Made by a program: the position numbers and the translations under genes. Below, piece by piece: positions 7,497 to 10,227 of a DNA stretch of 52,376 nt; the first letter of the stretch is position 1; every line of letters begins with the position of its first letter. Origin of the DNA: Prasinococcaceae sp. CCMP 1430 (taxonomy: Eukaryota; Plantae; Prasinodermophyta); assembly GCA_013416795.1 (NCBI GenBank), contig RQSC01000750.1, forward strand, positions 70,888 to 123,263. Reading direction: 5' to 3'. The notes under the pieces were generated by a model. It made no database searches. It worked only from the letters and a program-made list of their open reading frames with translations, and was not told the DNA's origin.

Positions 7497-10227
7497 ATGG
7501 CGCGGCGCTTGCGCTTGCGTTCGAGCGCGCGCGCCGCCGCCGCTGCAGCTGCTCTCGCGGCGCTCGCGGCGCTCGCGGCGCGGTTTGCCGCCGCCGAGGG
7601 CGTGCCTTTTGAGGAGCAAGCGCGCGATGCGCTCAAGTGGGCCCTCGACGTGCGTGCGGATGCCGTGCGTGAGTTCGCGCTCGAGATCGAGGCCTCGTAC
7701 GACTCCTTCCGCCGCTCGGGCTCGAAGACCAGCGGGTGCTCAGCGCCGAGCGCATGTGCCGCCGCGCTACCACCAGAAGCGGTGTGCGACGCGGAATATG
7801 GCGCGACCGAGGGCTGCGAGTGCGCCGGGCGCCGCGTGGACCACACCAAGGGCGTCATCAAGATCCCGGGCGAGGACTACGTGAACGAGTTGACAAAACC
7901 TGGGGCCAAGCACGCCGTGTGCTTCATGGACGGCCTCGAAACCACCGTCCAGAGGATCCGCGACGCTGAGAGCGACGCCTCCCTGAAGGTACGCTCGCGT
8001 CTTCCTCCTTTGCCCCCTTGCTCCAGGCGCGCGCACGCGGCACCCGACGCGCGTACCGCCGCTGACGAGCGCCGCCTGTGCCCTCTTTCCCTCATCAACC
8101 CCATCAACCCACACACCGCACCCCCCACCCCCCACCACACACACACACTTCTAACCCCAGACGATGTATATTGGCACCACTGCGGGCGCCTTCTGGCAGC
8201 ACCCAGGTATCCTGTGGCCGCGTGACACCGAAGGGTGCGACGCCAACTACGACCCACGCGTGCGGCCGTGGTACGTCTCGGGCGCGTCGGGGCCCAAGAA
8301 TGTCGTTCTCATACTCGACACGTCGGGCTCGATGGGTCGCAACGACCGTCTAGGAAACATGCAGGAGGCTGCCAAACTCGTGGTGAGCGGCCTCACGCAC
8401 GCGGACTCAGTGGCCGTCGTGACATTCTCGTCGGACGCGGCATCCGAAAACAACTATCTCGTGCCCGCCACTGCATCCTACCGCAGCAAGATATCGTCTT
8501 GGATCGAAAAAACTAAGGCTGCGGGCTCCACCAACTACACTGGCGCGCTCGCGTCCGCGATCAACATCGTGCGGCGCTCTGAGTCCAGCGACCGCATCAC
8601 GGGCTGCCGCACGGCGTATGTCTTCCTGAGCGACGGCGAGCCCAACGAGTTCGAAGATGGGCGCATGTCAGACATCCAGGCCCAGATCGCAAGGCTGCGC
8701 GCAGAGGGAGACGACTCTGGCCCGGAGGAAAAGGTCTTCTGGTTCGGCCTGGGGACGGGAGGCGACCAGGCTGAGGAAGTGCTCGCGGATCTGGCGTGCC
8801 AATCAAGCAGCGTGTACACCCCGGTGCCCGACTTCGATCCGAGGGGGCTTGCGCAGTCGCTCGCAGGGTACCAGCACTTTTTCAGTGCTGAGCTTGGCTA
8901 TCTGAACGAGAATGCGCCTGCCTACACGCCCAAGGTGTCTTTCTCCGAGCCCTACACATCCATCCCGGACATCTGGGGCCAGGTGATCACAGCGGTGGCT
9001 CCGGTGTACGACCGTTCGAGTACACCATGAGTCCTAGTCGGTGTCGCTGCCGTCGACATCCCCGTGTGCGAGTTCGAAACTGCTGTGGAGGCCACGGGCT
9101 ACGTCGGCACTCCTTCCGCTGCTGTCCGAGAGACCAAAACGGGGTGCACGTGCGCCACTGGCAGCTACACCTACGATGGGGCCACATTCAACGGCTGCAC
9201 CGACTACGACTGGGCGACGCCCTGGTGCGCGACGACGGACTGCGGCACGTGCGATGGCTTAACGAGCTCTGGATGCTGGGACGAGTGCGATGTGTCCAAT
9301 ACGCCCAAGGGGCTGGTGGAGTCGGAGCTCCAGGCCCGCTCGCTCGACGATTCCTGCGCAGAAATGTCTCTGGACGACTGCGCGCTCCTTGCGCTCAGGG
9401 AGGCCAGCTGGGACGGCTACAGGTCGTCGCCCTGCGGCTCGCAGCGATGCGGGACCGGCGCCAGGCTCACCCCGTCCAATCCCTTTGAAGGAGTCTCGGG
9501 CTGGAGTGACTTCGAGAGCACGGGCTATTCGAGCACGGACAACAAGAAAGATGTGTGCGATGATCCCTCGCAGAGTACCGCGATCTGCGGTACGTGCGAC
9601 GCGGTAGTCATGCAACCCCCCTGCACGAACGAGGCGTGCGTGGAGGGCGCGCGCCGCCGCGAAGAGTCGAGGTATGTGGACCCCATCCTCCAGATGTGCG
9701 GACACGCGAAGTTCCCGGCGGACGGCGACGATCCTTACTACGGCGAGCCCGTGCGCGGTCGCGACGACGACGACGATGACGGTCCAATTACGGATGATGA
9801 GGGCGGAAAATCGAAGCAAATCCCCATCTACTACTTCGCACCCGTCGTAGCCCTCGCTAGTGCCGTGTTCATCCTGCATTCGCGCGCGAAAAGGAGGCGC
9901 GCGGCGGCGACGAGGGGGCAGCAGGGCCCGTCGAGCTTCCAGGCAGGCATGGGCGCGGGCGCCCCCCCCGCCTCACAGCCGCACGGCTTGCAGATGTTTG
10001 GCCGGCAGGCCCCATCTCCGGGCTACGTGACGGCGCCTCCCGTGTACGTGGACGGGGCTGGTGCGCAGATGCAGCCTGGCTCCTACGTTGTGGCTGCACC
10101 AGGTGGACCGCCGCCGCCGCCGGTGGTGGCGGCGGCACCCGGGGGGTACATGTCAACAACGCAGCCTGTGGTGTATGCTCCGCAGGGCGCGTCTCCGCTT
10201 CCACCACAGCCGCCACCAGGCTACTAG
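7497..10227 (+). CDS. Alpha2delta/CACHD1-like VWA + dCache type I membrane protein; exons 7497-7988 and 8161-10227, with an in-frame TGA at 9028-9030
   Basis: Signal peptide, then YDPRVRPWY (8248-8274), MIDAS ILDTSGSM, VFLSDGEP, SEPY...VITAVAPVYDR, *VLVGVAAVD, an FN2-like module, a TM helix (~9826-9876) and a Pro-rich tail. Intron 7989-8160 is GTACGC..CTAACCCCAG, phase 0. Confidence 0.85.

Follow-up and report, generated by a model that had tools for sequence, protein, structure and literature searches.

The question raised by this locus is whether a single in-frame TGA within a receptor-like gene is a recoded stop, or simply an ordinary stop codon in an otherwise intact frame. The window, by which we mean the whole 52,376-nucleotide stretch of DNA analysed, contains a frame opening at 8161/8164 which, when the sequence is read directly, is interrupted by t9028 g9029 a9030 (TGA) and then runs on for 398 more codons to a TAG at 10225–10227. 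Translation of 8164–10230 gives QVITAVAPVYDRSSTP before the stop and VLVGVAAVDIPVCE after it; immediately around the site the residues are VITAVAPVYDRSSTP upstream and then VLVGVAAVDIP past the stop. As single uninterrupted proteins are homologous to both sides of the TGA, the split frame is not a chance pair of open reading frames. An earlier sequence-only reading had placed this TGA between the tyrosine (8953–8955) and the aspartate (9055–9057) of an amino-acid-binding motif and had described the frame as open for about 400 further codons, to a transmembrane helix and a tail; the TGA is indeed present in the assembly sequence at that place, and the continuation is as described (transmembrane helix at 9820–9876). 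Judged by comparison with related sequences, the TGA is not a recoded stop but either a base error or a nonsense allele of the ordinary kind.

The gene has two exons (7497–10227) and encodes an alpha2delta/CACHD1-like protein whose parts follow in the order signal peptide, YxxxxRxWY, VWA domain, remainder of the Cache module, Cys-rich stalk, transmembrane helix and Pro-rich tail. The features are listed below, all on the plus strand; P0004 and P0168 are two of the uninterrupted relatives, and the N piece and C piece are the parts of the frame before and after the TGA.

7497–7988, plus strand: exon 1, with the start codon, an Ala-rich signal-peptide-like N-terminus and an N-terminal helix/Cys region (open reading frame and sequence).
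7989–8160, plus strand: intron of 172 nt, GT..AG, phase 0 (sequence; orthologues colinear across the junction).
8161–10227, plus strand: exon 2 (sequence and orthologue colinearity).
8248–8274, plus strand: N-terminal half of the dCache_1 amino-acid motif, YDPRVRPWY (YxxxxRxWY; motif definition PMC8915833).
8299–8838, plus strand: VWA domain (Pfam PF00092, E 1.3e-17, residues 47–226 of the N piece).
8317–8331, plus strand: MIDAS DTSGS, within the VWA domain.
8953–8955, plus strand: motif Tyr in SEPY (8944–8955), after the VWA insertion; Y264, nearly invariant in alignment A2 (61 relatives).
9028–9030, plus strand: in-frame TGA; its A (9030) is found in the window only, all wild haplotypes having TGG (Trp).
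9031–9819, plus strand: rest of the ectodomain, with the last Cache strand, Cys-rich modules and acidic stalk; 96% identical to P0004 and colinear with P0168 at 50% identity.
9055–9057, plus strand: motif Asp in GVAAVD (VAAVD 9043–9057), downstream of the TGA; D298, nearly invariant (61 relatives).
9820–9876, plus strand: transmembrane helix (sequence; model helix 558–582).
9883–9900, plus strand: RAKRRR stop-transfer stretch, directly after the transmembrane helix.
9901–10227, plus strand: Pro-rich cytoplasmic tail and terminal TAG at 10225–10227 (translation; pLDDT below 50).

Exon 1 matches the N-termini of P0168 (8e-23) and of the Cymbomonas protein P0187 (5e-16), and in both the homology to exon 1 ends at the same ...SLK/N junction. 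Because these two orthologues pass straight on from this point into the start of exon 2, the exon junction is supported; among the wild haplotypes the intron is also more polymorphic than the exons. In the 61 relatives R34 of the first motif half is invariant, and P35 and W36 are nearly so. A Cys-rich module (GCTC..SYTYDG..C..W..PWC..C..C..CWDEC, 9142–9288) lies right behind the Cache strand; it gave no Pfam match at E up to 1, is conserved in P0168 and is modelled as short strands with high pLDDT. Its pattern is presumably reminiscent of a fibronectin type II or kringle-like module.

Comparisons of fold and with the PDB were made using the natural intact allele P0004; each exon, and the frame on either side of the TGA, was a query of its own. 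With P0004 as query, phmmer found CACHD1 in the PDB at 1.8e-8, in an alignment running from the pre-VWA motif through the VWA domain, and alpha2delta-1 at about 2e-7. The AlphaFold model of P0004 has a pLDDT of 72.5 overall and above 85 over nearly all of residues 31–390, with strands and helices across residues 290–511. The top 14 Foldseek matches to this model are all alpha2delta-1 or CACHD1 (E 8e-18 to 4e-14), and VIA-align gave Z 26–28 for alpha2delta-1 with 296–323 residues aligned, as against about 175–190 for proteins that share only the VWA domain. The dCache_1 amino-acid motif has been defined as YxxxxRxWY plus Y[x27–34]D, with a VWA domain inserted between the two halves in eukaryotes (Gumerov et al., 2022; PMC8915833). 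Here YxxxxRxWY stands immediately before the VWA domain, a VWA domain with a MIDAS lies within the Cache module, the Y and D that follow it are 33 residues apart, which fits Y[x27–34]D, and the likeness of the P0004 model to the alpha2delta/CACHD1 fold reaches beyond the VWA domain. The alpha2delta/CACHD1-like architecture with its VWA domain inside a dCache module, first proposed from the letters alone, is thus upheld by Pfam (PF00092), phmmer, Foldseek, VIA-align and the motif. Sequence and model together support the view that the gene specifies an alpha2delta/CACHD1-type receptor which crosses the membrane once and has one dCache_1 module, a putative amino-acid sensor, with an inserted VWA domain. 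In the model, strands 273–283 and 290–300 form a beta-hairpin; the TGA column is the opening residue of the second of these, the strand that carries the motif Asp.

The residue at the stop position was then read from relatives at increasing distance. P0004, a protein of 687 residues from a Tara Oceans metagenome scaffold (L001), spans both sides of the TGA and across the site reads DRSSTPWVLVGV, also given as DRSSTPWVLVGVAAVD. Scaffold L001 aligned to 8116–11367 at 98.3% identity, and at position 9030 the window has A where L001 has G. The same G, and hence TGG with an open frame, was found in all nine contigs compared (L001 and eight contigs from other ENA and Logan samples; ocean metagenome or run assemblies of different samples, 97.7–98.3% identical). 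In the 90% cluster of P0004 (24 members), 14 of the 15 variants listed extend across the site, and every one of them has Trp. P0168, which at 50% identity is colinear through the transmembrane helix and tail, also has Trp at this column, as do P0019 and P0025, the cluster representatives of the prasinophyte orthologues named below. Exhaustive searching with HMMER returned 3771 relatives; among 61 family representatives aligned from these, the residue at the column is W (17), P (31), A (4), H (3), S (2) or N (2), and two further residues make up the total. Most of the closest relatives are among those with W, and the wider family has P. The proposal that the stop is recoded therefore fails on its own terms, as orthologues have a sense codon (Trp) at the site, and one of the alternatives already listed, nonsense mutation of TGG to TGA or an error in the base, is the reading favoured by Trp or TGG in all wild haplotypes and the closest orthologues.

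Between these two, the TGA is probably a real variant, a loss-of-function allele (TGG>TGA) private to this lineage. The window differs from all other haplotypes by 24 private substitutions in 5.5 kb (4.4/kb), of which the A at 9030 is one, and the other distinct haplotypes have 3.1–7.1/kb; in exon 2 the private changes comprise four synonymous and four non-synonymous substitutions in addition to the nonsense change. As the rate is typical and synonymous changes are present, the window appears to represent a naturally diverged lineage, and in such a lineage a genuine private variant is a priori much more probable than a sporadic error. A single G>A transition, confined to the sequenced lineage, would have changed the conserved Trp codon from TGG to TGA at 9030, and of about 852 residues only the first 453 would be translated. 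Signal peptide, VWA domain and the first half of the motif would still be made, but the product would stop short of the final beta-strand of the ligand-binding module, on which the motif Asp lies, and of the Cys-rich stalk, transmembrane helix and tail. We infer that such a truncated product is most likely an inactive fragment, possibly secreted or degraded.

Alternatively, the strain may truly have TGG, with the gene intact and a base-call or consensus error at 9030; we consider this unlikely, although a good deal fits it. The difference is of a single base, every other haplotype has G at 9030, the downstream frame is intact, and the TGA allele has no independent sighting: an exact DNA pattern with R at 9030 gave no match in JGI metagenome contigs, and an exact look-up in a collection of 15 billion proteins returned neither of the two open-reading-frame fragments that a contig with the TGA would yield (8164–9027 and 9064–10224). 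The exon-1 open reading frame was likewise absent from that collection. Against it are the 23 other window-private substitutions in the same 5.5 kb, which occur at a typical haplotype rate and are in part synonymous, and the fact that the only private indel of the window, of 8 bp, lies outside coding sequence. The lack of any further lesion in the downstream codons fits a very recent mutation and also an error. Among the other searches, scanning JGI metagenome contigs for protein patterns of the N piece gave 195 pattern matches and zero relatives. Used by itself in a word search, the N piece brought up only three relatives, at 31–35%, full-length kin being beyond the length range of that search; the C piece recovered P0004, and P0004 itself found no annotated near-identical model in a reference genome.

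To return to the nonsense allele, the stop, if real, is recent. The dN/dS of the window against the others in the ectodomain is 0.51 downstream of the TGA and 0.46 upstream, and this match leaves no signal of decay. We did consider pseudogene decay as the source of the non-synonymous excess downstream of the TGA, but rejected it because the intact wild haplotypes show the same excess (piN/piS among them of 1.45 for the C part and about 2.8 for the transmembrane helix and Pro-rich tail) and because the ectodomain ratio of the window downstream matches that upstream.

Some other features of the variation may be recorded here. In the transmembrane helix and tail (9820–10227, L001–L009) non-synonymous polymorphism exceeds synonymous, with small counts and in low-complexity sequence. 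Codon 9259–9261 is TTA (Leu) in the window, a rare AT-rich codon in a GC-rich gene, and AGC (Ser) in L001, with Ser or Val in the listed protein variants; no base of the codon is shared between window and L001, and the third alone is private to the window. Relative to all metagenome haplotypes, the 8-bp private indel lies upstream of the start codon at 7027–7034 (region 7024–7037) and a tight cluster of five window-private substitutions occupies 7350–7356. L003 and L004 (together the haplotype of P0014), as well as P0005, carry a 6-nt insertion that adds two residues to the acidic D-rich stalk before the transmembrane helix. On a larger scale the window has low-GC islands at 2001–4000 (44%) and 46001–48000 (50%) and is otherwise 62–73% GC.

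In the remaining readings the frame is expressed beyond the TGA. UGA is the leakiest of the stop codons, and Trp is among the residues inserted there by near-cognate decoding in other eukaryotes. Leaky or programmed read-through that rebuilds the normal protein at a low level would be consistent with a frame that stays open for 398 codons past the UGA, but is very improbable: the stop is conserved in no relative, the context is UGA-G and not of the stimulatory UGA-CUAG type, and the 100 nt after it form a less stable fold than their shuffles (z +1.58), so that the programmed read-through suggested earlier did not hold up. We give similarly little credence to a low level of full-length receptor arising through tRNA-Trp at UGA-G, or through A to I/G conversion at the RNA level, which none of the present findings favours; if it were true, either route would restore the ancestral Trp, and the allele would be a hypomorph or a conditionally expressed sensor, not a null. 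Insertion of selenocysteine at the UGA can be dismissed almost entirely, as scanning 7000–12000 against Rfam, with E up to 10, found no SECIS, the 770 nt past the terminal stop hold one ATGA (10937) and no SECIS-like AUGA..AA..GA pattern (the absence of a canonical SECIS from the 3' UTR had been remarked on before, correctly), Cys is found at the column in none of the 61 relatives, where Trp or Pro is common, and the wild alleles have TGG in all nine contigs. Equally implausible is removal of the stop as an 18-nt micro-intron, for although the GT..AG stretch at 9020–9037 exists as first described and its length is divisible by three, the loop is of equal length in all 61 relatives, with no gap across 9020–9037 or elsewhere around the TGA column in any aligned sequence, its excision would cost the protein conserved residues (P288, that at the W/P column and the hydrophobic 290–291 positions), and the real intron of the gene is 172 nt.

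On either reading, nonsense allele or base error, the stop has little significance beyond annotation: in this strain the gene calls for a nonsense-allele flag, or for a check for an assembly error, and its model needs no fake intron, selenocysteine or read-through. A real stop would make the strain a natural knock-out that can be compared with its wild-type relatives. The intact wild alleles show that a complete alpha2delta-like amino-acid-sensor motif has been retained in prasinophyte picoalgae, and this agrees with the published view that the module is old and widespread in eukaryotes.

Among known proteins the best structural match to the algal protein is alpha2delta-1 (PDB 8hlp_F, 7mix_D, 8fd7_D), at about 20% identity, with which it shares YxxxxRxWY, an inserted MIDAS-containing VWA domain and then Cache strands with Y...D. 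It differs in having one Cache module where alpha2delta-1 has two nested, and in possessing a true transmembrane helix, a Pro-rich tail and an unrelated Cys-rich stalk. CACHD1 (PDB 8s7c, 9eq6) is likewise a single-pass membrane protein with a VWA-in-Cache ectodomain (Foldseek E 1.6e-14 to 3.0e-14; VIA-align Z 23–24), but of its two dCache modules it is the second that retains the amino-acid motif (PMC8915833), whereas the algal motif flanks the VWA insertion. The prasinophyte orthologues Cymbomonas KAK3288795.1, Pycnococcus XRA97351.1 (annotated as 'voltage-dependent calcium channel') and Pseudoscourfieldia XRB11810.1 are 40–45% identical over the N piece and, unlike the window copy, are uninterrupted. 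Proteins with a single module of this kind are known from protists (PMC8915833), and relative to the protist and invertebrate proteins with a single dCache_1AA and a VWA domain the architecture is the same, with the full motif in the intact algal alleles; there is no difference in kind, the window copy being merely interrupted by the stop. The protein thus belongs to a published family, and the receptor type is one already known in green algae.
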